The notes under the pieces: model-generated | Database searches by the model: none | The model's input: only the letters and a program-made list of their open reading frames with translations | What the model was told of the DNA's origin: nothing | DNA from: Klebsormidium nitens | Lineage: Eukaryota > Plantae > Klebsormidiophyceae | Reading direction: 5' to 3' | DNA: 64,000 nt | Assembly (NCBI GenBank): GCA_000708835.1 | Contig: DF237151.1 | Coordinates: 1-64,000 of the forward strand | Part shown: positions 8,101 through 57,882 of the stretch, piece by piece | How the letters are laid out: each line of letters begins with the position of its first letter | Numbering within the stretch: the stretch's first letter is position 1 | Made by a program: the position numbers and the translations under genes

Positions 8101-10021
8101 CGCCAGGTGGCAATCTGGTTCCAGAACCGGAGGGCGCGGCAGCGGAGCAAGCAGACGACCCAGGAGTACGACCTGCTTAAGAAGGACTTCCGGCTGATTC
8201 TGCTAGAGAACAAGCGGATGCGCCAGGAGGTTAGGGCCTTAACCCTTGTTTACAGTGTCAACGATCAATCTTGTGAATTTGATTGGTTTTGCCTTTGCCG
8301 TTGGAAGCAGTGTGGAGGCAAGTATGCTAAAGAGGTAGCAGCTTTCCGGTTTCGCTGTTCGTTGATATAACAAATAGTTTTGGGTCTGTGATATCGGCTC
8401 ACGGGAGAGAGGCTTCTACATTGTCTGCTTGGGTAGGAAGCAGATGCGTCACGAATCTAGCGAACCAAGCCTTTGTGAATCAAAGCATTGGCGCCCCTTA
8501 CTGCGAATCTCAACAAGCTGGTCACTAGGTCCTTTTGTTTCGGCAAAAAACACTTCTGCTGCTTTTAGCAATCCCACATTCATGGCGCAAAGCGCCAGAT
8601 ACTCTGTATTTGTGTAAAGACTCAATTTGCCCGATTTTCGAGCTTACTTCTGTGGGCCGAGTCCAAGGTCCGCTGAACCAACTACGATAGCTCCGCTAGC
8701 TTTCACTCGTCCTGACTGGTTCGCTCAGTGTTCGCTCAGTCTCACAGTGACGGACACTTTGTCGGGCATCGTACTCTCGAACGCCGGGGCAAGCGCGCCT
8801 TCTGCTGTAAACTTAAATACGCCGTCCCAAACCAAGAAAAAGCTCAATCTGGCGTCACTTGCGGGCGTTGTGTGCTGTACACGCACAAGGGTACATAGCT
8901 TCCGAGCCACTCTTTGCATCTGCCGAACGAGGGTCTCAGCGCTTCGAAGCCGTCTCCTCCTCTATTCATTTTGCTGCAGACGGCCTCTTATGTCGGATCA
9001 TGTAAGGAAGCCACTGAAGCAATACCCATCAAGTTTAAAACCTATAATGATCTAATACCTGTAAGAACCTACCCGGAACGAAAGCCAAACGAAATCCCTG
9101 ACCAACAGACATGACGCGCTCCGCACCCGAACCCACCCTAATCACCACACCAACCCCACCCGTTCCCCGGGCGTGTCTTATAGCTCTTAGATCCTTATAG
9201 GTATTATACTTTATCCTTATCTGAAGCAGGACGCTCATCTGCTGGTCGTCAGCCATATAGAAAGGTCTAGAATGTAAGACTCGTCTTTCTTGTGACAAAG
9301 CCACGCCTGCTTCGGCACTGGCTTGAACTTTGGGGCGGATAACGTGCGTTCGGAAAAAGTCCGACCCAATTCTCTGTGTTTGCAGTTGACCGAGCTCAGG
9401 CTTTTAGTTGAACGATCAGACGCCACCCCAGATCACGCCTTCCTCAATTTCTCCGCAAGCGAGAAAGAGAGCGCCGCGGCGCGTTTTGACGCCGCAGAAC
9501 CTGCGGGGCAGCGAGCGCTTATGCCGGCGTTGCACTCGCCTATGGTGCCGATTCGCGCGCCTGGGGGAGTGCTGGAAGCGCCAGTCGAGAACCCCCGGGA
9601 AAGTTTACCCAGATATGCGGAAGGCCCGCCTAGCCATAAGCGGTTGCGGGTTGACCCTCCTATGGCGACCGAGGGGTTCGCAAGCGAGTCGGTGCATCCG
9701 GTTTTCGGCGACGTTGACTTTACGGATGAGTTGTGGGACAGCGTAATCTCATCGCTGGAGCAGAGCTTTGGGTCCGAGGTCATACAGGACCTGTTCAGGA
9801 ACGGGGACGCGTTCGCAGAACTGGGCTTGCCTAAGCCGCCGAAGTATGGTTATAGCCTGAGCCTACAAGAAACGAGGCCGGGGGAGTGCCACGTGAGCCA
9901 CGTGGACCACGTGGCACGAGGGAGGACTGACGCGGGGGATCTGAGTCTTGTGCAATCGGCATTGGCGTTTCAGAGCGACGATTACGTAGGTATCAACAGT
10001 CCGTGTTGGGCGGATTTGTAA
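5189..10021 (+). CDS. Homeodomain-leucine zipper (HD-Zip class I/II-like) transcription factor, about 378 aa, 4 exons
   Basis: Exons 5189-5246, 6960-7232, 8060-8229, 9386-10021; GT-AG, phases 1/1/0, total 1137 nt. The spliced homeodomain KRKLSKVQVRELEKLYQGGYTGAPAGRAAIAADLGTTERQVAIWFQNRRARQRSKQ is in canonical register and is followed by a zipper (EYDLLKKDFRLILLENKRMRQE-LTELRLLVE). Exon 1 is the least certain. Confidence 0.85.
6380..7005 (+). repeat. Tandem array of degenerate copies of the HD-Zip exon-2 acceptor plus exon start
   Basis: Unit of the type cag|aggtcttcgccagccaggctgcccaggagataatgcaact, with the AG ending near 6504, 6634, 6713, 6833 and the functional 6959. Similarity generally increases towards the functional exon. 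Confidence 0.85.
7640..8115 (+). repeat. About 113-bp tandem array of HD-Zip exon-3 acceptor plus helix-2/3 coding start
   Basis: gcag|cggg acceptors end at 7723, 7833, 7946 and the functional 8059 (spacings 110, 113, 113). Each is followed by a variant of accaccgagcgccaggtggcaa. Confidence 0.9.
9115..9170 (+). repeat. Short dispersed repeat, copy 1 (in HD-Zip intron 3)
   Basis: gctccgcacccgaacccaccctaatcaccacaccaaccccacccgt resembles 20103-20150 (gctccgcacccgtacccaccctaaccaccaaactaaccctacccgt). Both are followed by a tat/tta-rich tract. Confidence 0.6.
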
Positions 10022-38300: not shown

Positions 38301-41300
38301 ATAACCTGTTTAACCCAGTACTAGCGGGCGTGTTTGCGGGAAACGCGGTCGTAGTCAAGGTGAGGCTGGATCTCGAAAGATGATTCTTTGTTGGTTTGCA
38401 GACGTGTAAAGTTCGAACCGCTCGGAGTACTGGGGGCAATCGTGCCATGGAACTACCCGTTCCGTAACCTGTTCAATCCGGTACTAGCAGGCGTGTTTGC
38501 AGGAAACGCGGTCGTAGTCAAGGTGAGGTTCACTCTTCTCGGAACTGCTTACCCGTTAGATTGCAAACGCGTGGTATGAGCCGCTTGGCGTTTCGGGCGC
38601 CATTTTGCCTTGGAACAACCCGTTCCATAACCCTTTCACTTCGGGGCTGGCGAGTATGTTTGCGGGGATTGTGGCCGTTAAGGTGAGTTTGGTTTCGAAA
38701 GCTGCTCAGTCGCTGGTCCGAAGTTGGTTTCTCTTTGTAGCCTTGCATTGCTAAGGGTGATTAAGAGGACCACCCTTGCTGTCAGCTTTATCTTCTGTTC
38801 CAAGTTCGGCTCGTACGGGATCCACTTGCGACTGACTTGAAGCGGTTGCTTTGTCCTCGTCACCTGCTCTGTTCTGTTTTATGGGGCCCGTGCTGGATCA
38901 GGCCGGAGGATCGGGGTGTTCTGGACGCAGTGGCACTGCCCGTTACCAGCGAAAAGCGAGTTTAGGCTTTGTGGAGCTTGTTTATCTTCATGGGACTGGC
39001 TTCTCTAGGTCTCTTTTGGCGGTGAAAAAGACTTCTCGCAAGATATATTTGTAGGCTTTGCTCCAGTCGTCTGGTCACAAAATTTTCTTTGCGCATTTGC
39101 GCTGACACCGCTCTTACTATCAACACAACCATCGAGTGCCCAAATCCGTCCGGATATGTCCGACCTGTTTGCTTGTCCCCCGTTATAGCACCATCGCTCA
39201 GCCATAAGCCCCTGACATCATGTCAGGACATTATAAGTTTTCGTACTGAAGTTCTGTGTCCATCTTAGGTCTCCGAGCATACTAGCTGTTCCGCCGGTTT
39301 TCGTCAGTCTATATCATCTTTTAACGTAACATTAGTACATCATGGTAGGACGAATCGCTTGGTTTATGACAAAGTCGCATATTTTTTCCAGGTATCCGAG
39401 CACACTAGCTGGTCCGCCGGTTTCTACCAGTCCATCATCCACAAGGCCCTCGAGACCGTTGGCGCCCCGCACGACTTGGTGCACATTGTTACCGGCTACG
39501 GGGCGACCGGGCAAGCCCTTGTCGAGTCCGGTGTGAATAAGCTCACGTTCGTCGGGAGCACTGCCGTGGGGAAGAAGGTCATGGCGGCGGCCGCAGAAAC
39601 CTTGACACCGGTGGTTCTGGAACTAGGGGGAAAAGACCCGTTCGTAGTCTGCGACGACGCAGACCTGGAACAGGTGGTGTCAATTGCGCTGCGGGGGGCG
39701 TTCCAGGGGAGCGGGCAGAACTGCGCGGGGGCGGAAAGGTTTTACGTCCAGGAGGGTATTTACACCGAGTTTGTGGACAGGGTGGTGGGCAGTGTGAATA
39801 CGATGCGGGTGGGGCCGGCGCTCGAGCGGGGGCACAGTGACGTGGACATGGGGGCGGTGTGTATGCCGACACACGTGGATCACTTACAGGTGACCACTGC
39901 CTCTTCTTACATTTGTTTTGCTTAGGGCTCCTTTCTCAGTGTAGCGTGGGTGATCCTTCTTCGTGGGGTTTGAGTGGGCACTTGACGCTTGTTCAGAGAA
40001 TTTTTGGAAATACGCGACACGGCGAAATAATCATCAATCTTTAGATCTTGCGCACAGAATTTCGATACAAAGTCTAATGTGTGCAATGCGGTTTCCAAAA
40101 GGCAACTGAAGGGTGCCCTTCGAGGCTCTGAAGGCTGGCCCAATTTATGTTCGATTGGATTTGACAAATGGAAGTCTCTTCTTTTGTCAACTTGTCCCAG
40201 TACTCTGTCTGTTCACATGGGAAACGATTGCTTTTCTCGTCGCTGTTGGACTTGGCTCACTCCACACCTTTCTTTATACGCAACAGATTCCACTGGCAAG
40301 GATCCGAGGTTCTCGATTGTCAGGGCTTTCGGTATTAAAAGGTTCGAAGCTTTTGCGATTTGTTGCCGAAGGAGCATCAAACAACGATACTAACCTGTGA
40401 ATGGGCGTCAGCTTGGGCCTAACAGGCGTCTAAACCTTTCTATGGGAATTCGCCACTTGAAGGAATCGTCCGTGCGCTTCTCCACCGAGTTGACAGCAGA
40501 CTAAGGGCACTTCCTTGCTATATTGGCATTAGACGGAGCTGACGCACTGTTCCTCACATTCGTTACGAGGCCGCACAAAATGCTCGTGACGTGAAGCAAG
40601 GTGCTAACGTAGTCTCGGATGTCTGCAGAGCCTTGTAGACGAAGCGGTCGCGGCAGGAGCGAAAGTGCTTGCGGGGGGCACGCCGTTGCCTGAGATAGGG
40701 GGGCACTTCTACCCCCCCACTGTGCTGGTGAATGTCAATCATGGGATGCGGATAATGCAGGACGAGGTGAGGGAATTGACACCGTTCTGCACGAGACATG
40801 CGGGGCTGGCTTAAGCGTCTCTGAAATTGTCAAAAAGTAGATAAAGTTTGTTGCCTGGTCTTATCAGATTGCATATCGCTCAGCCATACAGGATCAAGCG
40901 GACCTGTGCGTAATTGCCAACTATTCCCGTTGTTCTTCCTTGACGCTCGTTGGCAGGTTTTGGTGTTGAGCCAAAAAATGTCGTTCGCTTCCAATTTGTC
41001 GGCTGGTCTCGAGGTCTCTACAATTTCCTCACGGTCGCACTTGAGTAGAATGCGGCCAACCTACTCAAGGGCTCTATTAACAGATGGAGAGCAGGTTTGT
41101 TGTTTGTCTCATTAATTGACTTCTCCCCCAGGTTTTCGGACCGATCATGTGCATCATGCGATTCGACACGGACGATAAAGCGGTCGAGCTCGCAAACGAC
41201 TGCCGATTCGGACTGGGGAGTAGCGTGTTCTCGGGGAGCAAACGACGGGCGCGCGCGATCGCGAGCCGGATACGGGCCGGCATGGTTTCCATTAACGATT

Positions 41301-44892: not shown

Positions 44893-47800
44893 TCACGCCG
44901 CGACCGCCTTCCGTGTCGCCCCGAAGTGCGTCATCAACAATTCTTCGACGACCGGGACGAGCTGGCTCACGGGCACCCCCTTCTTGACGCACTCCCCCAG
45001 GTGCGAATCGGAGCCAATGCGGCCCCCCAAAAAGATGTCGACGCCCTCGCACGGCTTCTTGTTCTCGTCGCGCGCGGCCGCGCCCATGAACCCGATGTCC
45101 GCCACTTGGACCTGGACAAAAAGGGAGTCGGTTTCAATGCTCTGATTTTATTGGCGGAAGAAAAAGAGGAACAGAAGAGTTCTCTGTTTTATTGCGCGCG
45201 CCTATGAGCCCAATGTCCGCCACTCAGGACCTGGTTAGGAAAAACAAATGATTCATCAATCTTCTTGACTGTAAAGAAGCGTGTCTGCACCCAATTTGAA
45301 CACCCCATGATTCACAAAGCACTCGCTTAAAAAACACGAAGGAATAGAAAGTTTTGATACAAAAAAACGAGGTTCATGATATGTGTGTCAAAAGACCTTA
45401 ATCACAGGCGCAGTCCCTCGTGAACGTAAGCAAAGAGGGAACGAACGGGAAAGAGGACCAACTCGGCGAGAAGCGCGAGTGTCCGCCGGTGACTGTTCGG
45501 GACCCAAGTGCGATGCAGAAACTTTTCAATGCACTTTCTCAGAGAAATAAGCGAACCAGGAATCTGTTGAGGAAGGGCCCTAAGATCAACGAGTTCGCCG
45601 CTAATCGGAGGTGTTCAAATACCCAATTAACTTCCACAGGCGCTTCCTCGTGATTGAAAGTGAACCGGAAAACGCACCTGTCCGCAGGTGTTCGGACAGC
45701 CAGTCCAGTGCATCCGGACGGGCGTGGGGACGTCCAAGCTCGCCTCCAGCTGCGCCGTGATGTCGAGCGCCCGATTTTTGGTCTCAATAAGAGCCACGCC
45801 GCAGAACTGGCTGCCCGTGCAGGAGACCTGGGGGAAGAACAAAACACGTGACGTCAGCAAAGAGTGGAGGCACGTCAGGGCACGGAGTCGAAAAGCCAAA
45901 CTGGCTGCCCGTGCACGAGATCAAAGGCAAGGAGGGGAAAAGTCACGTCAGCAGTGGACGACAATCGGGCCCCATTTCCAGTCGTAACAGGAGCTGAAAC
46001 TGTTACCCAATTGCCCCGACCAACTGGGCAAATCGGATGTTAGGTGAGTGTTCTTGATGTAAAGAAGATAGCCGTCTGCTCAAAAGGCGGAAGTAGAATC
46101 AGAAGAACACCGTCATCCCTATCAAGCGGTTGGTTTACCCTGGTCTTTATCCACCAGGATAGTGCTTCCTCAAACGGCGCGAAGCAGGACCAGACGAAGC
46201 GCACTCAATCATGATTTGAAGAAACCACTATGGTTACTCACCAGGTTAGCGCTGAGGTTGCTCGGGAACGGCGTGAACTTCTTGAACAGCGGGTCCGCCA
46301 AAAAGGCTTCGACTTTGTCGTCCGGAACGTTCGGGATGATGAAGTTCTGTTCGACCGTCATGCGGAGCTCGCCGCTGCCGTACTCTTCCGCAACGCGCGC
46401 AAACTCGAACATGTCGTCGGCCTGAGGGAGGAGGTTAACCGAGGGTTAGAAAGATAACCCAGTAATTTATCTGGACCATAACGTTCTGTTCGACCGTCAT
46501 GCGCAGCTCGCCGCTGCCGAACTCTTCCGCAACGTGCGCAAACTCAAACATGTCGTCGGCCTGTGGAAGGAGGTTAACGGAGGGTTAGCACATGATATGG
46601 AGGATAAGAGCTAGTAATTCGCATAGACGAGATTGTAGCCGACCGATCATGCGCATTTCGCCGCTGCTGTACTCTTTCGCGAATTAGAACGTGTCGTCAG
46701 CGTGGAAAGATGTTGATGGGGCCTTAGCCGGAAGTCAAAGAGTTAGAAGAGCGCCTTCGCTTCCTTAAATCCAATAGGTTTTGCTCGACCGTCGTGCGCA
46801 GCCATACTCTACCGCGATGCATGCAAAATCAAACATGGTCGTCGGCCTGTGAAAAGTATCGGCATACTTGGCACAGGGTTTTGGCCGGCCCGATGCACTT
46901 TGTGAGTGGAGTTTTGAGAGACCGACAAGAGCTGATTGGAGGGAAGATGTCTGTACTCTTCGGTGCTATCATTCGCTGCTATCATTTGCCTTCAATGTCT
47001 CCAGTACGAAAGAGATCAACATCTTACGGGTACTCGAGAAGTTGGGCATGAATCTGCAGTTCAAAGGACTGTGACTAGTGGGCGCTGCTTCAGCGTTGAA
47101 TTTGCGAACACGTAGCACTCTTTCCAATTTCAGTATCGACCGCCCTTCGATTCCGTGGATTGTAAAATTTGTAAACTTATCCCCAAGCTTGCGCCTTTCC
47201 ACATCTGCAACCCTGGAATGTCTTCACGCTGTGATACAAGCGCCCCAAACCCGTCAACACACCGACCCAGACTCATCTAACCCCGCCTTTAACTGCACCG
47301 AATCCCCACAAACCCTGCCCTCAACCTCACCTGCAACCGGCCGACCGGCACCAACACACCCACGAAAATCAAACCGCCTGCTTTTGGTCGATACAAGCCT
47401 CTCATGACCAAAACCCCACTTTAACCTTCCTTTGACCAGCCACAAACCCGACCTTAACCTCACCTGCAACCGGCCAACCGGCACCAACACGCCCACGAAG
47501 TTCAGCCCCGCCTGCTTCTGCTTGTTCACACCGAAATAACTCCGCCGTTTCCACGTGGGGTCCACCATGTCCGTTCCGGCCCTTGGAATGGTTCCGGTGG
47601 GCATCCGTTTGGCGACCTCTTCCCGGAACGCCTCGAGACCGATCTCGTCGATGAGCCACATCATACGCGCCTTCTGGCGGTTGGCGCGGGAGCCCAGGTC
47701 GCGGAAAGCTTCCAGAACGGCCTTGCAGAGCGGCACGACGTCATCTGCGGAAACAAAGGACACCAATCAGGATTTCAGAAAAGGCTTGCCAGGTAGACCT

Positions 47801-50800
47801 CGATTTAGCAAGGGTATGACGTTTTCAGTTCGATGTTTTTGTTTGATAATTTAGCAAGCGTTCAGCACTTCAGGTCTCTGTTTAAATCGCACGGAGTGAA
47901 ACGATTGGATGGGGCAGTGGGTTGGGAATCCCAGAGAGCAACTCTTGGGCAATGAGAACCGTGGCGTTGAATCGAGCGACAAATACACTCTACGAAAGAA
48001 GCAGGCCAAGCGCAGACGGCGACTAGTCCGTACAACGAAGCAGGAAGCCCGAGTCAAACGCCGTCAATAACCCAATCACTGTTTTCCAAAGCCGCTGAGT
48101 ATTGGCAGATATCCCCCCCCCCCCGGAAAGAATTCAAGCCCACCCACCTGACGGGACCCACGCATCCATGGGGATCGCCTCGGCGCAGCGCTTCTGGGAG
48201 AAGAACCCCCCCACTAGGATGTTGAAACCCAAAACTCCGTCCTTTGTCGCGGGCATGTAAGCGAGATCGTTGATATGCGGGTGCTCGTACAAATCGTGCG
48301 TCCCAACCACTGCCACGTTCCACTTGCGGGGCAGGTTCGTGATGTCGAGATTGCCCTTCTTGTTGTTATTGATGTAGTCGTTGAGGGCAATGTTGTAAGG
48401 AATTGTGTCGAGAATCTGCACGAATGATGAGATTCTTTAAAAAACGGTTTTGTGAAGGTTACCTGGACAATCTGCGTCGGTTTTCACTATCAACGAAAGA
48501 GAGCCATAGGTTTGATCTAGTCGTATAGCCGTTGACAGATTTGCTCGGTTTTGAGATAAGGTGCTATATCCTTAAAACGGATCTAGAATACCAGGCGCGC
48601 TTCATCTGCTTTCCTTCACATATAGTCTTGCAGGTATAATCGTGCTCAACTGGACGGTACAACCGCTTAGCGACTCCTGTTCATCAGAAGCCGAACGCCA
48701 AAGCCGTTTCCACTTGGCAGAGCCAGCATCAAGACTTCTTTTACAAAACACCCAGGTAACCTGAAAGTCGGACAAGTGTCAGAATGCTTTTTCAAGTCCA
48801 CTTGAAAAGGGGGAAGAAGAAAGTCCAACTCAAACTCACCTCCTCAGGATCGATGCCTGCAAGGGGGCTCCCCACCCCATTGCGCACGTTGTCCATCCCC
48901 GACTGAATCGCGGACAACCCGTGCTCCTCAAAACCCTTCATGATTTCCGGAACGTCCTCCAGCAGGATTCCACGCAGCTGGTAGTTCTGACGCGTGGTGA
49001 TGTCAGCGCAGCCGTCAGCACCGTACTTTGCGATCACGCTGGCGAGGTATGCGGTCTGCTTGGCCGTGACGATGCCGTTGGGGATCTTGAGCCGCATCAT
49101 GAAGCGCCCGGCTGTAGAGGAGGGTTAAGAATTGGGTTAAGTAGCTGATGTGGGTAACGTAACAAGGTTGGGTATATAGTGCATTGATCGAGCAGGGTTT
49201 TTGCGACAGGTATGCTTGCAGGCTGCGGAGGCTGAGGGAGACTTTGAGGCACGTCATGGATAATCAGCAGCGAGGAGGTTTGGAGCAAGTCCATTATTGA
49301 CGACCTGTTTTCGGGGGCTTGTTGGTGGAACCTGGTAGTAAAGTAAACTCAGCTATCCGTGTCACGTCTCCTATCTCTCTTGGGTGGCCTTTGAAATTGA
49401 ATCCCTAGGTCCGTTTTCAATTGAAGAACATATGCGCAGCCTTCAAACATGGTGGCAAATCCAGTCAGTACTGCTGCTTGCACCAGTAGTGAGTTCCTCT
49501 CCCCCTCGACTTCGTATACCTTCTAACATGACCCTGGCCATGATTGTGCACCGGCATGCACCCACAACCTCGTTTCTAACAAACCGCCCTCCTTCTGTGT
49601 TACAATCGAAGGTACACTTGTGCACCTGAGAATGGAGCGAGAAGTTATCTGCCGATCCAGACCGCATCCTCAAATATGGCTTCAGCGACCAAGCTGGCCC
49701 GGTGGGCACTGATTAATTGCCTGACGGGGGCCCATTCCCCCAACGCCCTTTGAGAAAAGTAGTGCAAATCCACTCACGTGTGCGCTTGCGCCTGTGGAAG
49801 AGCCCCATCCACTTGAGCCGGACGTCAATGTCGTCCTTGCCTTCTTTCGTTTTGTCCACCTCCGCAAAGCCCTGCTCTGCCAAGTCCTTGATCCGCATCT
49901 CCGTAAACAGTTTCATGGGCTCAGCCCCTAGCTTGATCTGCGAGCCAGTGTAAAGAGGTGCGAGTAAGTAAACATGGGGTGGGAATAATGGCACTTTTAG
50001 TTGGGGACTTCAACCGTTCACGTTGATTGTCAAACCCGCAAAGCCTTGCTCCGCGAGGTCCTTGATTCTCGTCTTTGACAGCGGATTCAGCCGGCTAGAT
50101 CTGCTAACATGAAGTAAGTGCAAGGTGAGAGTATTGACAGTCTGGATTTGGACATTCGGAAAATCAACATTCACTAGATAGCCATTGCACCCCTGTCGAT
50201 GGTCAGCCCAAAGTTTGCTTCGTCCAAGCGGTTCTCAGAAGAAATCGAAAACCCAGATCTGCCACAGACATGCAACTTGGTGCTAAACTTGCCCTCTACG
50301 CGTACTCGCAGCTTCCGCATACCTTGTAACGGCTCACCCAACAACTGCCTACACTCAGATCTCCTTTCCAAATTATCGTCCCTTATGCAGCGGCAACAAA
50401 AGCTCGATCCAATACCTGTCCCCGAGCACCAAGGAGGCCAATCAACCAAATACATTTTTACGTGACCACATCAAGCTGATGAAACTTCACTTTACCCAGA
50501 TCACTTCTATCTGAAACAGAGTGAATTTGTGCGGAAGCAACGCCTATCTATTCGCACATCATCATACAATTGCAAAAGTCTGCATGTAAAACCAGGACAA
50601 TACCACCCACTCCTTCTGATGTCTATATCGCTACATCACACTGATCGTGCTGAGACCTCACCCACAAGCTTAATCCACAGCTATTCCAGCTCAATCTGTC
50701 CACCGCAACTTCCAAGACGCAAGCTGAGCTTATGCGCATCCCCAGAAGATCAATCCACAGCAAACATCGTCACACGCACCTTTTCAGCTGGGTTTAGACT

Positions 50801-51151
50801 GGCTTGGAACTCCTTCTTCAGCTCCCAAAACCCCTCCTCATTCTTGGCCACCCGAGGCACCAACCGTTCCGCATCGACCTGTGGGGGGGCACTTTCCCCC
50901 TGCATCGGCGGGGGGGGCGCCGTAGCGACCGCCTTTGCGGCCACATCCCTGGGTTTCTTCTCGGGCACCTTTTCAGTGGCGGAGATCACCGAGGCCCTGT
51001 TTTGGGGGGGTGCGGCGCACGGGGCAGCCTTCTTTGGCAGCGGCATTGCACGAAGGCCGGCGAATTGGGGCCCCAGTGCAGCATGTGGGTTAGCGGCAAA
51101 CCCGGCTGGGGTTTGGGAGACGCCCGTGCGGGTTAATGTGGCAGCCTTCAT
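44893..51151 (-). CDS. NII1: Ferredoxin-nitrite reductase, plastid-targeted, 8 exons
   Basis: Exons (minus) 51151-50780, 49937-49778, 49111-48840, 48415-48148, 47744-47464, 46421-46242, 45827-45678, 45111-44893, phase-consistent. Motifs: RLKWMGLFH, FMMRLKIPNG, ADITTRQNYQLRG, NLPRKWN, and the siroheme/4Fe-4S ligands CTGSQFC and TGCPNTCGQ. Ala/Pro-rich transit peptide. Confidence 0.95.
46480..46860 (-). repeat. Three echoes of the NiR exon-6 acceptor plus start
   Basis: Copies at about 46480-46565 (near intact, acceptor retained), 46640-46705 and 46785-46850 of cag|GCCGACGACATGTTCGAGTTTGCGCGC. Further NiR echoes lie at about 45195-45240, 45890-45960, 47325-47395 and 50035-50105. Confidence 0.85.
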
Positions 51152-53566
51152 GGTTGCTACAGAGTGCCGTCCAATGTTGATGCTCTGTCGGCCTATCAAA
51201 GGGGCGCTGCAGGCTTTCACTCCAGGGGAAATACTTGAAGTGTGCCTGTCGTGATCAGCTTACGTATAGAGGGTGAAGGGTCTGAGATGCTGAGCTGAAC
51301 TCTCCACGGAACAACCAAGGAAGGGCTGATCTAAGTAGTAGTGAATATGGACTTTGGATCGAGTCACCTGCGAAAAATCTCTCCAACTTGCCAGCTTCTT
51401 CTGAGCGCCCCTTAGCAGATCTCAATGCATATGCTCGAGTAAGATAGCAGCAGTAAGCGTGGCACCAAAATGCTTTGTACGACTGCAATGCCGAGGGTTG
51501 TGAAGATGACCTTGCAAGCTTCAGCGATCTGAAGAGATCTGAGATTAGTGCTTTGAAGCAGGCCAAGAGAAGGAAGACCCAAGGAGCTAGGTAGCCATGC
51601 AATCCAGCAGTGGAACTGTTCGGAAGGGACGGGCCAATGGTCAATGTGATCTGGGCGCACTGACAAGTCATCTGGAGCTCAGTCGGGAGTCAGACAGCAC
51701 TACCTACCTGGTCTGGATTCTGGTCTGGTGTGCATTATTTGTTGGGCTTCGTTGGTTGCCTCTAGCTCAAAGAAGGGTGGCCGAAAGAGGACGCTGAGGG
51801 GATCCCGTGGCGACTCCTCTGCAAGATCAGCTGTGGAGGGAACGCAGTTCCAAAGGGCGGAAGGGGCACGAGTCGAGGCATTTGATTCGTCGCACATTTG
51901 CACGTGGTACCCGTGACTCTGACAGCACGGCTGATTGTGCCAGGCCACGTGTCAGGTCGACTGCGGCCCCGGCCGCGGGGCTTTTACGCGCGTGTGAACA
52001 TGGATCTGAACGCGCGCTCAGAGTTGTAGCACTGTGTCTAATAAAAGTCCAAAGGCTTCAGAGCTGAGTGACTCAGAAGAATCTACCGGCCACCTTGACG
52101 GTACCCAAAAGAGAGCCCGGTTATATAGTCCCGGGCCCTAAATAGGCATGAAGGGAGCACTTGATCAGTAAAACTTAAAAGACGAAGTGAGACTCGGAGC
52201 CTGCCATTGCATTGCTCATGCACGAGGGTGGTCGCATTTCGCTTTTGAATTGTGCTCTGAAGAGCCTGGAAAGCTGTGAGAAATCTCAAGCAATCTGCGG
52301 AGAACCTGCTGGGAACTCTTGAAGGGGAAGTATACTGCGTCCTTGCTGCGGACACTCTTCAAATCAACTCCTTCTGAGTTCGAGGACCGTGCTAGCTGCG
52401 GTTAATTAATATAAGGTGAGAGAGAGCAGAACGGCCTTCCTGATCAGAGTGCTGTAGCTGTACAGTCAAGAGCCTTCTGCAAGCAACATTCAGTATGTCT
52501 TCTCTCTCTGCCGACCAATCTGCTTCTCTCAGATAGGTCTACTTACAAGAAGCTTGATTGCATGTTAGGGCACATACTTGGTGTGCAATTCTGATTCGCT
52601 GGCATCCAATCTGCTTGTGCGCAATGTGCTTTTCGCACTGTGTCAGAACCTTGAGAAACTTCATTCAGTGTTCACAGCTGATTGGCGCTGCGTACTTATC
52701 GCCACTGGATATTGAAAATGCTGGGTCTCACGCAGTTCAGAAGTTCTTCAAACAGCAGACATAGCTCTTTTTTGACCACTTACAGCTGCCTCTAGCTCTT
52801 GACTGGACCTTCTGCATTTGATTCTCAACACCCTAATCTTGGAAATGGACTGTCATCCCTTTATTGCTCAAATTGTGCAGCAAAATGACAGGTTATTATT
52901 AGTCCATTGCTGTGAATCATCACTCCTCTGGCACTTGAAGTTTGACAGGTCATCTCCATAAGGTTCCCTCAAACGGCGTCCCCAGCTAGCATTTACTTTC
53001 ATGGCGTGCTCTGGTTTTTAGAGGAGCAAGCAGTATCACATTGCGCATTGAGGTTTATACGGAAGCTTGGACTGATCCTTTCTTCATGTAGCAAGTTTTC
53101 AGTAGCCACCGATGAAAGAAATTCTCCTCAGGCCAAAACTGATTTAGTGCAGCAGTCAACAACATCCCAAGTAGCAGAGGATCATGAGTCTCAGCTGCTT
53201 ACAAGTCCGGAGAAGAAAAGTGTATTTGACACTCCCTGGAGCCTACCTTCATTTCTAACACTAAAAGACTAGAAATGACTAATTTTTCATTTAGATTTAG
53301 TGGTTCTATCAGAACCGTTATGAAAGTGACTTTAGGACAGGAAGCCGTGCCTAAGTGCCTGAATTCAATTCTTTTCCCTGTCGTTACAGACTGTCTGTAC
53401 ATCACCTGGCCCTTGTCACCTAGTTGCAATGCTGTCAATGTCAGTTTAATGAAACAGCATCACTCGACATGTTCCGGTCCCTCTAGCTACTCTCCATCCG
53501 CAAAGAAAGTGCCCTTTCTCAGGCATACTCAGGAAACTACGTGTCTCGTCAATTCCTGCTGCAGAT
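51152..53566. promoter_or_regulatory. Divergent intergenic region between NiR (-) and LYR/NAR1 (+)
   Basis: Head-to-head orientation, a TATA-like tatata near 52124-52129, and cacgtg elements near 51901 and 51947. No convincing ORF. Exact promoters are not resolved. Confidence 0.4.
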
Positions 53567-53842
53567 ATGCCCGCTCTTTGGCTTAACCCAACCCACGCCA
53601 ATGCCAACCGAACCGTCGTCCTCAGTCTCTACCGCCAGCTCCTTAGAGAGCTCGACAGAAACTCCCTAGGCCTCGGCCTTCTCGCCCGGGAGTCGCGCAA
53701 GAACGAGCTGCGGGGGTTTTTCATCCTGGGCCGCCAGGAAGAGTCCGTATACAACATAGAGAAGCTGCTTGATACGGGGCGCTACGTGCTCGAGCAACTG
53801 AGGCAAGGAAAGGTCCCGACCGGCGAACGGCCCTTCTTCTAA
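53567..53842 (+). CDS. Small LYR-motif (Complex1_LYR-like) protein, 91 aa
   Basis: VVLSLYRQLLRELD...RKNELRGFF...LLDTGRYVLEQL matches the LYR tripeptide plus downstream R-x-x-F pattern. It is preceded by an acceptor-like gctgcag, so an upstream exon is possible. The stop lies 9 nt before the NAR1 ATG. Confidence 0.7.
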   Translation: MPALWLNPTHANANRTVVLSLYRQLLRELDRNSLGLGLLARESRKNELRGFFILGRQEESVYNIEKLLDTGRYVLEQLRQGKVPTGERPFF

Positions 53843-53851
53843 CGTGGCCAC

Positions 53852-56800
53852 ATGGCCGCTGTCCAAGTCGTCCGAACGAGCTCCGTTTGTGGCGCCGTCC
53901 GAAACTCCTCTGTGAGCTGCCGTGCGAGCCCCTCGGGGCAGCCCCTCCCCGTGCCTAGTTACCGCCCCTCCGCCCCTGCTTTGCGCAGCCGCTTCCTCTC
54001 TAAGCCTTTCCTACCCTCCTTGGCCCCCAGCAAACTAGCGCGAGCCTCAAAAAGCCCCACTCGCGCCAGCGTTGACATCAGCACCCCCTTTGGGACGGAG
54101 ATAACCACCGGCGGGGGGAATGGCGTGCAACCGACCCCCGTCGACTCCAAGGGTGACCTCACCCCGCGGACCAGTCAGATCCTGGACGTCCCGGTTCCGA
54201 GGGTTCTGAACGCGCGGCAAGTGTACGTCGCTGCCGCAAAGCTTGCGGTTGTTAAGGCGAAGTTGACGAACCTGAGGATTTTCCTCCAAGCGATAGTGGC
54301 TGGCGTTTTCATCGCCCTCGGGGGGGCGCTTTTTCTGACGGTCGGGGGGGCGTGCCCCACGATGCAGGCAAACAACCCTGGGCTTCACTCGTTCTTCAAG
54401 GGGCTCATCGGGCTGCCGTTCGGATTGACCCTCTGCGTCTTCACAGGTAAGGTCTGCAGTACTATCATCCCGCTGAATGTGCCAGCTGAATCGTGGCCAT
54501 TATTTTTCCTTAAGCAGTACAGGGTTCTGGAGTTTGCGAAACACGAGACTCAGTCAAAGTGCACTTGGTTCTGATCTACGAGTTCCTAGTACTGTCCCGG
54601 ACAAGGGCTATTAGGTTTTAAACTGCCCCCATTGGTCACACCATGCTGTTGATTGCCGTGTTTGCCATGACAGCGCACGTTCCCTTGCCTTAAGTTAACA
54701 TTGAACTCAGTGCGCTTCATGTACCGTTTGCTAAGTTTTGGGAAGGCCATCCCGTCCCAGATGCGACTTGCGCATACAAACTTTTGCATGCAGAAGATTC
54801 CATCCGAATAGCTTGTGCGTCAATGGAACATTTTGCTGGACAACATTCGTCTCAGAGGTCTAATCATACATTGGACTCTTGGACTCCATGCTTGAATCCC
54901 CATAAGCAGACACCATGCCTCTGTTGACAAGCTTTGAAAACGAGGCCCTCCCTTAAGTATGTTGTGCATTCAGGAAAAGTAAGCTTTGAGAATAATAAGC
55001 TCGAACTTCCAAACTGAAATTCTAACCCATAAAGTCACCTGCTGCGCGCCAATCCCCAACCTAAACCCACAAAGAAATCGTACCCGTTCCAGTCTGCCGA
55101 CCTTATAGTTCCGACAGATTACTATTCCAGATTGCCGTTTCTTCTTCTGCAAAGACCTCAAGGTGCGCTGGAAGATTGCCTTAGCAATTCCTCGATCTGG
55201 CTTCCACGACTCTCAAAGCAGGAGCGGAGCTTAGCGAGATACGGTCTGTCAACCATTTCAAAGCCAAAGGAATTGCGAACATTGCAATAATCGAGCTAAA
55301 CAGCTAGGATTGACTTTGGTGGTGCGTCTCTGCCAGGTGTCGAGCTGTTCACAGGGAACACCATGGTCATGACCGCGGGCTGGCTGGACGGGCGCATCTC
55401 CTTCGGGCAAGTCATGCGCAACTGGCTCTTCAGCTACACGGGGAATTTTTTCGGGTCGCTCCTGGCTGTGTGGGCCTTCTCCGTCGCTCAGATCTGTAAG
55501 TGGTGAAAGTCTCTGATGAACGCTTTATCCGCGAAGTAATCGGCAATCTTGGCAAGTGTCTGTAACTGCAATGGGCGGTTCGTAGGTCGTTCTAAGGGCC
55601 TCCTCTGTCGATCAGATCTGTTGGGCCATTAACATTTCTCTTCTTTCCTTCTGAGTGGGTCCAATTATCAGGACATTCTAGGACTCTCGTCGTCGGATTG
55701 ATTTTGCTGCGCTCCTTCTCGGGAAGAAGGGCGACCTTTCTTCCTCTGTTAGTTTTGGTACCCTTGTGAAGAATGCTCGCAGCGTTGTTGGATTGCTGCT
55801 CGACGTTTGCGCCCTCGTCGTAGTTCAGATGCCTGTACTAAGATGAAGGGTTCCGCTGCCCTCCTCATGACGGCTCGTAAACTGTATTATGCAACTTTCG
55901 AGAATATTGTCATCCCTGACTGACCCTTCACGGCGAACTGATGAGCCTTCCGTCGACTGCTGGATCTGAAATATTGTGTCTCCGTTGCAAGGAGACTTCG
56001 ATCTGGTCGACCTACCAGTCAAGCACATTTCTAACGAAACGCAGCCATTGTTCTGCACTGAATGCACTCAACAGTATCTTGGAAGTCGCTTGACGATCCA
56101 GAAGCATCCAGAAAGTCATGGCCAGGACTTCGCGCTCGTGTCAAGGCGTCAGAATGATGCGATAAACCCAACTTGAAGAAGGGTCTCAAAAGCATACGAA
56201 AGTCCTCAAAGGGCCACCATCCGACCGGAAACGCACAGAACCACTGATGCCTAATCGAACACTTCGACTTACCATTTCGTCTCCGATTCCGCTCTCTCTC
56301 AGTGCCGCATGCCGCTAGCCAAGCCACGTCGATCGGCCTGTCGGTTGCCAAGACTAGCTACCCCCTGGCGACGGTGTTTATGAGGGGAATACTCTGCAAC
56401 TGGATGGTCTGTATGGGTGAGTCGTTCGCCAGATTCCGCTCGTTCCGCTCGTTCTGCTCGTGCACCCAGTTTCCGTTCTGCCAGCGAACATCCGTGACTG
56501 CGAGAAACCGTTTTGAGAGGCTTCAGGGTTTGGTTCCGGGTGCGAGGGTGACATGATGGACGATTTCACTTGCCATTGTAACCGGCCATATGAGATCTGT
56601 GGCGCTAGTTCAGACCTTCAGTTCCGAAGTTGATGTGGAGGAGTTGAAGATTGAACTTCTCAGCTTCTGCATCATTGCTATCTTCGTTTTGTTCATTTTG
56701 TTTTCTCTGTTCCCGCTCCACAGACAAGTCCCCCAGTCTCTCTCCTTGCGGTGCCGCAGTTTTCGCGGGTTGACGCTGGGATGCGGCAGTATAACATGTT

Positions 56801-57882
56801 TCTACTGCCATTGCTTTGGAGCTGTTTGTGGTACTGACGCAGCGACGGATCCTGTACACGGAGTGACTTGTTTTTATGTCAGATTTCAAAGCCTCCCAAG
56901 GAAATGATACAACTTTCGCTGCGGTCATCTTCTATACCCAGCAGAGTGGCAGCTCAGCTTCTGGCGAACTTATTCGCCACAAACAAGTGATCCAGATTTT
57001 TGATGAGTCTGTGTAGCCGAGCAATTGAAACTTGTCACGTGCCCCTCTCGTGTGCAGCCGTCTGGATCGCGATCGCGTCCACCGACGGCGTCTCCAAGTA
57101 CGTCGGCATGTTCCTCACGATCAGCTCCTTCGTGGCGTTGGGCTTCGAGCATTCCGTCGCCAACATGTTCATCATCCCCTATGTAAGTTTGCCCATCGCT
57201 TATCCCTATTTCGCGCTTGATATGCGCGTTTGTTCCTCTGGGAGCTAAAGCTGTCTTCATCGTCAAAACCGGGGGTGAAGGTTTTCGATACCGTCTTCTT
57301 TCTGTGGCACCCACCTGAGCCCTATCGTCGTATCCCCGTCTTTTTGTTCTGCACACCCTCTGTTCTGTCGTACCTGCTGATTCATTTCTGATCGGTCCTA
57401 CTCTCCGTATTATGGGCAACACTTTGCCGCCGTTTTGTGTTGGATAGACTTAGGGTGCGAAGAGGCGACCAAGTTGTGCTTGCTGACGTCAGCACTTGTG
57501 GTGTTCGGGGTCTAGTACTGTTCAAGAAGCACGTTTTTCTTGGTCCACGAAGGATCTGTTTCGTAAGCTACTTGGGGCCTAGGAGGTTTGGGGATGGATC
57601 AAGCGGCAGCATGGCGGACTGCTCACGTTATGATTTATCTGCTGCTGTCTCATTGCGAACGGGGTCGTCGCTGCTGGAAAGCCTATCGCCTGAGAAACGT
57701 GCTGAACGCCTGTGTTATTAATGCAGGGAATGCTTTTGGGCGCTAACGTCAGCTGGTCTCAATACCTGCTGGGCAACCTGCTGCCGGTTAGTATCGGGAA
57801 CATTATCGGTGGCGCCTTTTGCATGGCGGGAGTCATGGGGTACTTCTACTCCGAGAACCTGAACAAGCCGAAAGAGGCTTGA
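53852..57882 (+). CDS. NAR1: Formate/nitrite transporter (NAR1-type, probably plastid-targeted), 5 exons
   Basis: Exons 53852-54446, 55337-55495, 56303-56416, 57058-57182, 57727-57882, phase-consistent. FNT motifs: AIVAGVFIALGG, GVELFTGN, GILCNWMVCMAVW, GFEHSVANMFIIP, NLLPVSIGNIIGG. Ser/Arg-rich transit-like N-terminus. Confidence 0.92.

Follow-up and report, generated by a model that had tools for sequence, protein, structure and literature searches.

An unannotated LYR-protein gene nine nucleotides upstream of NAR1 in Klebsormidium nitens: a candidate bicistronic locus

Introduction

In the streptophyte alga Klebsormidium nitens, a small open reading frame (ORF) for a LYR-motif protein ends 9 nt before the start codon of NAR1, a formate/nitrite transporter gene. 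Is this small ORF a gene, and do two coding sequences so close together share one mRNA? The pair lies in a 64,000-nt stretch of contig DF237151.1 (assembly GCA_000708835.1, positions 1 to 64,000; window and record numbering coincide), hereafter the window, and is divergent from the ferredoxin-nitrite reductase gene NII1. An earlier note on this DNA had proposed a bicistronic unit, either a nitrate-regulated dicistron or a conserved upstream ORF (uORF), that links nitrite transport to iron-sulfur (Fe-S) cluster assembly.

Hundreds of bicistronic mRNAs are known from chlorophyte algae, and they include cistrons of five LYR subfamilies (Gallaher et al, 2021, PMC7896298). They have been documented by Iso-Seq, proteomics and mutagenesis (PMC7896298, PMC11892635), and the second ORF is reached mainly by leaky scanning (Dueñas et al, 2025, PMC11892635). 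The green-algal precedent invoked in the earlier note thus holds in so far as LYR proteins are documented cistrons (PMC7896298), but it comes from chlorophytes, and K. nitens is a streptophyte alga. Here, we report that the LYR ORF is a genuine protein gene under purifying selection and not a chance frame, and we consider it fairly probable, from the anatomy of the locus, that LYR and NAR1 are carried on one shared mRNA.

Results

The LYR ORF occupies positions 53567-53842 of the forward strand, with an ATG at 53567, 91 open codons (273 nt) and a TAA stop at 53840-53842. The 9-nt spacer (53843-53851) contains neither AG nor ATG, and the ATG at 53852 opens a 240-codon ORF that holds the N-terminal part of the Pfam domain Form_Nir_trans. 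The sequence and its open frames bear out the geometry described in the earlier note, including its point that a 9-nt spacer leaves no space for a separate terminator and promoter. When compared with known proteins, the exon-1 ORF matched GAQ84713.1 ("formate nitrite transporter [Klebsormidium nitens]") at 100% identity across exon 1, and ATG 53852 is the annotated start of that protein (CDS 53852-57882 on DF237151.1). We mapped the 382-aa GAQ84713.1 onto the window and obtained five exons separated by introns that are all GT-AG (Table 1); their joined sequence served solely for a table of codon usage. The assembly annotation contains no gene between NII1 and NAR1, and the exact 91-aa LYR product was not found in the protein collection, so the LYR ORF is an unannotated gene.

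To place the LYR ORF in a family, we compared it with Pfam and found a match to LYRM_2 (PF23655) with a score of 77.6 bits (cut-off 27; E = 6.4e-22); its scores for PF05347 and PF13233 fell under the cut-offs of those families. We also compared the locus with related loci on a Logan contig (L001), on JGI metagenome contigs (L002 and L014) and on Logan genomic contigs (L012/L013). The LYR proteins of L001 and L002 are 89% and 69% identical to that of K. nitens, and dN/dS of the ORF is 0.10 and 0.20 in the two comparisons (dS 0.6 and 1.1, respectively). Purifying selection implies that the LYR ORF is translated, though not from which RNA. The LYR tripeptide itself is L21-Y22-R23, and R49 and F52 lie in helix 2; in a 36-sequence family alignment F52 is invariant, and Y22, R23 and R49 are each at least 90% conserved.

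An AlphaFold2 model built from this alignment has helices at residues 11-29, 38-55 and 61-79 (mean pLDDT 80). The best Foldseek matches to the model are nearly all LYR proteins: L0R8F8 at the top (7o9k_v and 5ool_v, both mitoribosome assembly intermediates), then ISD11 and the complex I subunits NDUFB9 and NDUFA6. ISD11 superposes with an rmsd of 1.5 Å over 66 residues. A protein of only 91 residues yields weak Foldseek E-values, here 0.4-1. The model predicts that the LYR protein folds as a three-helix LYR bundle. The domain starts at residue 11, and the protein has no N-terminal extension able to serve as a plastid transit peptide.

An exhaustive profile search recovered only 67 cluster representatives, and all named homologues were streptophyte LYRM_2 proteins from land plants or Closterium, so that on present sequences the subfamily appears to be restricted to streptophytes. 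Arabidopsis LYRM12 (AT1G65032) occurs only in plants and has no known function; GFP tagging places it in mitochondria, as it does all the Arabidopsis LYR proteins (12 of 12; PMC12257267). LYRM12 is likewise about 10 kDa, with its LYR tripeptide at residues 23-25 and the R..F pair at 50/53 (21-23 and 49/52 in K. nitens), and land-plant LYRM_2 members have these motifs at the same positions as the K. nitens protein. The land-plant and Closterium genes differ in that they stand alone. From motif positions, size and Pfam family, and not from an alignment with AT1G65032, the K. nitens ORF is probably the LYRM12 orthologue. By analogy with its relatives, the protein may be mitochondrial and bind acyl carrier protein (ACP).

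The order LYR-then-NAR1 is kept in five Klebsormidium-lineage loci (L001, L002, L012/L013 and L014). L001 has a divergent nitrite reductase gene, LYR, a spacer that is also 9 nt long (8286-8294, with 2 substitutions) and NAR1; the nitrite reductase gene is upstream and divergent in L014 as well. A second clade, formed by L002, L014 and L012/L013, has LYR proteins 69-73% identical to that of K. nitens and a much different spacing, with 1378 nt (L002), ~690 nt (L014) and 747 nt (L012/L013) between the LYR stop and the NAR1 ATG. In these loci the LYR TAG stop is followed directly by a donor-like GTGACT or GTAACT; a pyrimidine tract and CAG stand ~130 nt 5' of the NAR1 ATG, with no ATG between. 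An acceptor-like tract also lies 2-3 nt 5' of the LYR ATG in all five orthologous loci, and it resembles the four NAR1 acceptors. The second-clade LYR ORF thus looks like an exon bounded exactly by acceptor and donor signals within the NAR1 leader, and it could be a cassette exon that is alternatively included. These signals fit an intron inside a common LYR-NAR1 transcript. In K. nitens and L001, unlike the second clade, LYR is fused to NAR1 exon 1.

Outside this lineage the pairing was not seen. The nearest called gene to the Closterium LYR gene is 4 kb away on the opposite strand, and on a streptophyte alga contig from ENA the neighbours of LYR are GRAS and SAC3, with no NAR1 pairing at either locus. 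A search for related loci gave no true relative in a metagenome contig collection, which evidently does not contain even the JGI sample behind L002. The earlier note had asked about conservation of the pairing in other algae, and it proves to be conserved among the five Klebsormidium-lineage loci but not in Closterium or the other streptophyte alga, which points to a lineage-specific genomic arrangement.

In one predicted land-plant protein, P0042 (375 aa), an N-terminal LYRM_2 domain is followed by a longer C-terminal region that, judged by eye only, resembles helical repeats. P0042 probably stems from a merged gene model, and it hints that some land plants, too, have the LYR gene immediately 5' of another gene.

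How, then, are the two ORFs expressed? In K. nitens, two conserved ORFs on the same strand are separated by a distance (9 nt) far below normal intergenic spacing. Because only 9 nt follow the LYR stop, any mRNA with the whole LYR ORF runs into NAR1, and a NAR1 leader of more than 9 nt must extend into LYR. The account that we favour, with modest confidence in the whole of it, is a single transcription unit with two ORFs. Transcription would be driven from the region common to the divergent nitrite reductase gene, and the mature mRNA would carry two independent ORFs and end at the NAR1 poly(A) site. The first AUG (53567) would yield the small LYR-fold protein, probably the LYRM12 orthologue, which would act in mitochondria with ACP; the second (53852) would yield the plastid nitrite transporter. 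Ribosomes would reach NAR1 by scanning past an only moderately good LYR start, or by reinitiating across the 9-nt spacer. The small gene would then ride in the leader of the larger one, as do several LYR subfamilies in chlorophytes.

The start codons and the junction bear on this account. The LYR start has G at -3 and C at +4, and the NAR1 start has C at -3 and G at +4. Both contexts are intermediate; they are compatible with leaky scanning, but the fit is loose and not diagnostic. The sole other ATG between the two starts, at 53601 (Table 1), has neither favourable position; K. nitens shares it with L001 and not with the second clade. The junction stretch differs from L001 at 4 positions against ~20 expected from the remaining ORF, and synonymous divergence (pS) is 0.12 in the last 21 LYR codons versus 0.46 elsewhere (Fisher p = 0.019, post hoc, compared with L001). 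This synonymous constraint is absent in the comparison with L002. The pattern is suggestive of extra constraint on the junction, which could come from an element for translational coupling or from a start site of NAR1 within LYR.

Several results weigh against the single-transcript account. ATGs 5' of NAR1 are not depleted relative to synonymous-codon shuffles (in K. nitens 1 extra ATG was counted where 1.09 would be expected; counts at the other loci equal or exceed expectation), and the lack of an internal methionine in the LYR ORF is common across the family and not distinctive. Junction RNA folds no better than shuffled sequence (z = 0.29), and the reduced synonymous change at the LYR 3' end fits an internal NAR1 promoter equally well. 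With 0.7-1.4 kb between the ORFs, the second-clade loci offer space for a separate promoter. Exact-protein look-ups with K. nitens LYR and NAR1 found no transcript-derived contig, L012/L013 are unspliced genomic DNA, and a literature search found no polycistronic mRNAs in Klebsormidium, such mRNAs being documented in chlorophytes.

A doubtful but real possibility is that LYR and NAR1 are nested neighbours expressed from two overlapping transcription units, and no obligate dicistron. Most NAR1 mRNA would then start at an internal promoter or start site, within or just upstream of the 3' part of LYR, and LYR would be made from a separate transcript, either longer or prematurely polyadenylated. 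Relative to L001, synonymous sites are unusually conserved over the final 21 codons of LYR and the opening 11 of NAR1, which is what an overlapping DNA-level element predicts; the wide spacing in the second clade agrees with such an arrangement, and the introduction of PMC7896298 reports non-exclusive polycistrons in other eukaryotes. Yet any promoter-like conservation is indistinguishable from coding constraint, an mRNA with LYR only must still end inside NAR1, and conservation with L001 is continuous from 61 nt 5' of LYR instead of being centred on the junction alone.

We consider it clearly unlikely that the LYR ORF is mainly a regulatory uORF, whose translation, perhaps via the Klebsormidium-specific C-terminal tail ending in RPFF, would set ribosome flow to NAR1 and couple nitrite import to a cellular signal, irrespective of any further function of the peptide as a LYR protein. 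Such a role would suit an ORF that lies in the NAR1 leader with a gap of 9 nt, a nucleotide sequence constrained at the junction, and a tail beyond helix 3 that is modelled as disordered and is invariant in all Klebsormidium-lineage copies while differing from other streptophytes. However, stand-alone homologues of the same fold exist in Closterium and land plants, which sets the ORF apart from conserved-peptide uORFs (CPuORFs); the whole three-helix domain is under selection, again unlike CPuORFs; and the junction constraint is missing against L002.

A bolder and improbable reading is a dual-purpose first cistron. Ribosomes that translate a mitochondrial, ACP-partnered LYR protein would physically control how many others get to the ORF of the plastid nitrite transporter, and sister species would set the ratio by including or skipping LYR as an exact cassette exon. 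If this were true, nitrite import would be tuned to mitochondrial or carbon status on one mRNA, and streptophyte algae would have their first described case of a regulated nuclear dicistron.

Nitrite reductase is a plastid enzyme, and its clusters are supplied by the plastid SUF system. The earlier note had tied the LYR protein to this enzyme, and in that proposal it would aid Fe-S/siroheme maturation of nitrite reductase and hence be co-expressed with NAR1. LYR does adjoin NAR1 in the five Klebsormidium-lineage loci with a nitrite reductase gene near it, ISD11 is among the best structural matches of the LYR model, and ISD11 and SDHAF1 act in Fe-S handling (PMC4381221, PMC12257267). But the LYR protein is not an orthologue of ISD11, SDHAF1 or LYRM7: its best family is LYRM_2, its named homologues are streptophyte LYRM_2 proteins, and a PDB sequence search up to E = 10 gave no match to the ORF, though ISD11 structures were included. 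A plastid role is also rejected, given the domain start at residue 11 without a transit-peptide extension and the mitochondrial location of its plant relatives (12 of 12 Arabidopsis LYR proteins; PMC12257267). With the linkage also missing in other streptophytes and confined to this lineage, a functional nitrite module is very unlikely, and the nitrite/Fe-S link drawn in the earlier note falls with it as unlikely.

Stop-codon readthrough to a LYR-NAR1 fusion protein is extremely unlikely and was rejected: the two ATGs are 285 nt apart and so share a reading frame, in L001 as in K. nitens, with TAA and three sense codons between the ORFs, but chance alone would put a third of pairs in frame, no stop codon is less leaky than TAA, a LYR domain ahead of the transit peptide would block plastid import, and the architecture of the second clade makes a fusion impossible there.

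Upstream of LYR, conservation between K. nitens and L001 is unbroken from 53506 through LYR and the spacer into NAR1 exon 1, in keeping with one transcription unit. Near its start, at 53506-53525, both loci carry the short motif AAAGTG..GCC..TTT and then CAG. The second clade has this motif 5' of the acceptor that precedes NAR1 (L002:4620-4640) and not 5' of LYR; this shift is possibly chance, a branch-point or promoter element, or the trace of a rearrangement.

About 2.4 kb of upstream region is common to NII1 and LYR-NAR1, and it contains further blocks conserved with L001. The longest, at 51777-51931, is 155 nt and 84.5% identical, with identical runs of 47 and 29 bases and two CACGTG motifs at and just past its 3' edge. 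The block has no Rfam match, and no counterpart was seen in L002 or L014; it may serve the divergent nitrate-assimilation promoter as a cis-regulatory module. Two other blocks, at 52488-52528 (85%) and 51397-51456 (82%), are shorter. The former holds a CCAAT motif ~1 kb upstream of the LYR ATG; should a leader intron end at 53564, the true promoter could lie there. An Rfam search of 51100-54000 gave sub-threshold chance matches only, and a sigma-70/terminator scan, irrelevant to a eukaryote, gave nothing of note.

The next annotated gene downstream of NAR1 encodes an amino-acid permease. A Pfam scan of 10 of the 20 window ORFs of at least 170 aa revealed no further nitrate-assimilation gene, so within this 10-ORF sample the nitrite "module" of the window consists of NII1 and LYR-NAR1 only. 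An exon-sized ORF at 39359-39925 has a strong aldehyde dehydrogenase match (Pfam Aldedh, E = 1e-43); the nine other long ORFs scanned had no Pfam match.

Table 1. Features of the LYR-NAR1 locus and of related loci. Positions without a prefix are those of the window.
Feature	Position	Strand	Basis or remark
NII1 (ferredoxin-nitrite reductase) CDS, divergent from LYR-NAR1	44893..51151	-	annotation
Start of continuous conserved block upstream of LYR	53506..53542	+	first 15 nt identical in L001
Putative 3' splice acceptor (pyrimidine tract + CAG), 2 nt before LYR ATG	53543..53564	+	suggested by sequence
Sole other ATG between the two starts, out of frame, weak context	53601..53669	+	22-codon mini-ORF ending before NAR1
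Junction stretch: LYR 3' end, spacer, first 11 NAR1 codons	53777..53884	+	4 differences in 108 nt vs L001
NAR1 (formate/nitrite transporter) exon 1, includes predicted transit peptide	53852..54446	+	GAQ84713.1 mapping
NAR1 exon 2	55337..55495	+	GAQ84713.1 mapping
NAR1 exon 3	56303..56416	+	GAQ84713.1 mapping
NAR1 exon 4	57058..57182	+	GAQ84713.1 mapping
NAR1 exon 5 with stop codon	57727..57882	+	GAQ84713.1 mapping
Donor-like site directly 3' of LYR TAG	L002:3448-3456; L012:458-466; L014:9325-9333		second clade
Acceptor-like site preceding NAR1	L002:4680-4700; L012:1060-1080		second clade

Discussion

Our analysis adds a missing gene to the K. nitens annotation. It probably encodes the sole LYRM12-type LYR protein of this alga, hidden in the apparent leader of NAR1. 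Small ORFs in the apparent leaders of other K. nitens genes may be systematically missed in the same way.

If LYR and NAR1 do share a transcript, chlorophyte-type bicistrons, and with them the recurrent encoding of LYR proteins in this way, would extend to an early-diverging streptophyte alga, and the locus would bear on whether bicistronic expression was present in the land-plant ancestor. The two sister architectures, one with a 9-nt junction and one with a splice-bounded LYR exon, amount to a natural experiment on the origin of the locus and on translation of the second ORF. The present evidence reveals no new nitrite/Fe-S pathway.

Several known systems resemble the locus. The human MIEF1 microprotein (L0R8F8), the top structural match to the K. 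nitens protein, is also a three-helix LYR protein, and is encoded by an upstream ORF in the MIEF1 mRNA leader. It differs in having no detectable sequence homology, in belonging to another family, and in that its downstream gene product is mitochondrial versus plastidic. The CDC26-TTM3 pair, as cited in PMC11892635, shows that streptophytes, too, have nuclear bicistronic mRNAs whose first ORF is small, and nonsense-mediated decay is an issue for both loci. Its proteins are unrelated, and the pair is deeply conserved across green algae and land plants, in contrast to LYR-NAR1, which is restricted to the Klebsormidium lineage.

The closest likeness is to the chlorophyte bicistrons. There, too, a small conserved ORF lies 5' of a larger ORF on the same strand (273 nt in K. 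nitens, against a median ORF 1 of 291 nt in A. protothecoides), the two ORFs lie very close together, LYR-family proteins serve as cistrons, and the order is colinear in related species. The K. nitens locus differs in that it belongs to a streptophyte and is known here from DNA, its LYRM_2 family is apparently restricted to streptophytes, ATG depletion is undetectable, and its partner NAR1 is unmentioned in the main text of PMC7896298 and PMC11892635. Taken together, these comparisons suggest that the Klebsormidium locus is most likely a streptophyte case of a bicistronic locus with a LYR cistron, a class already known from algae.

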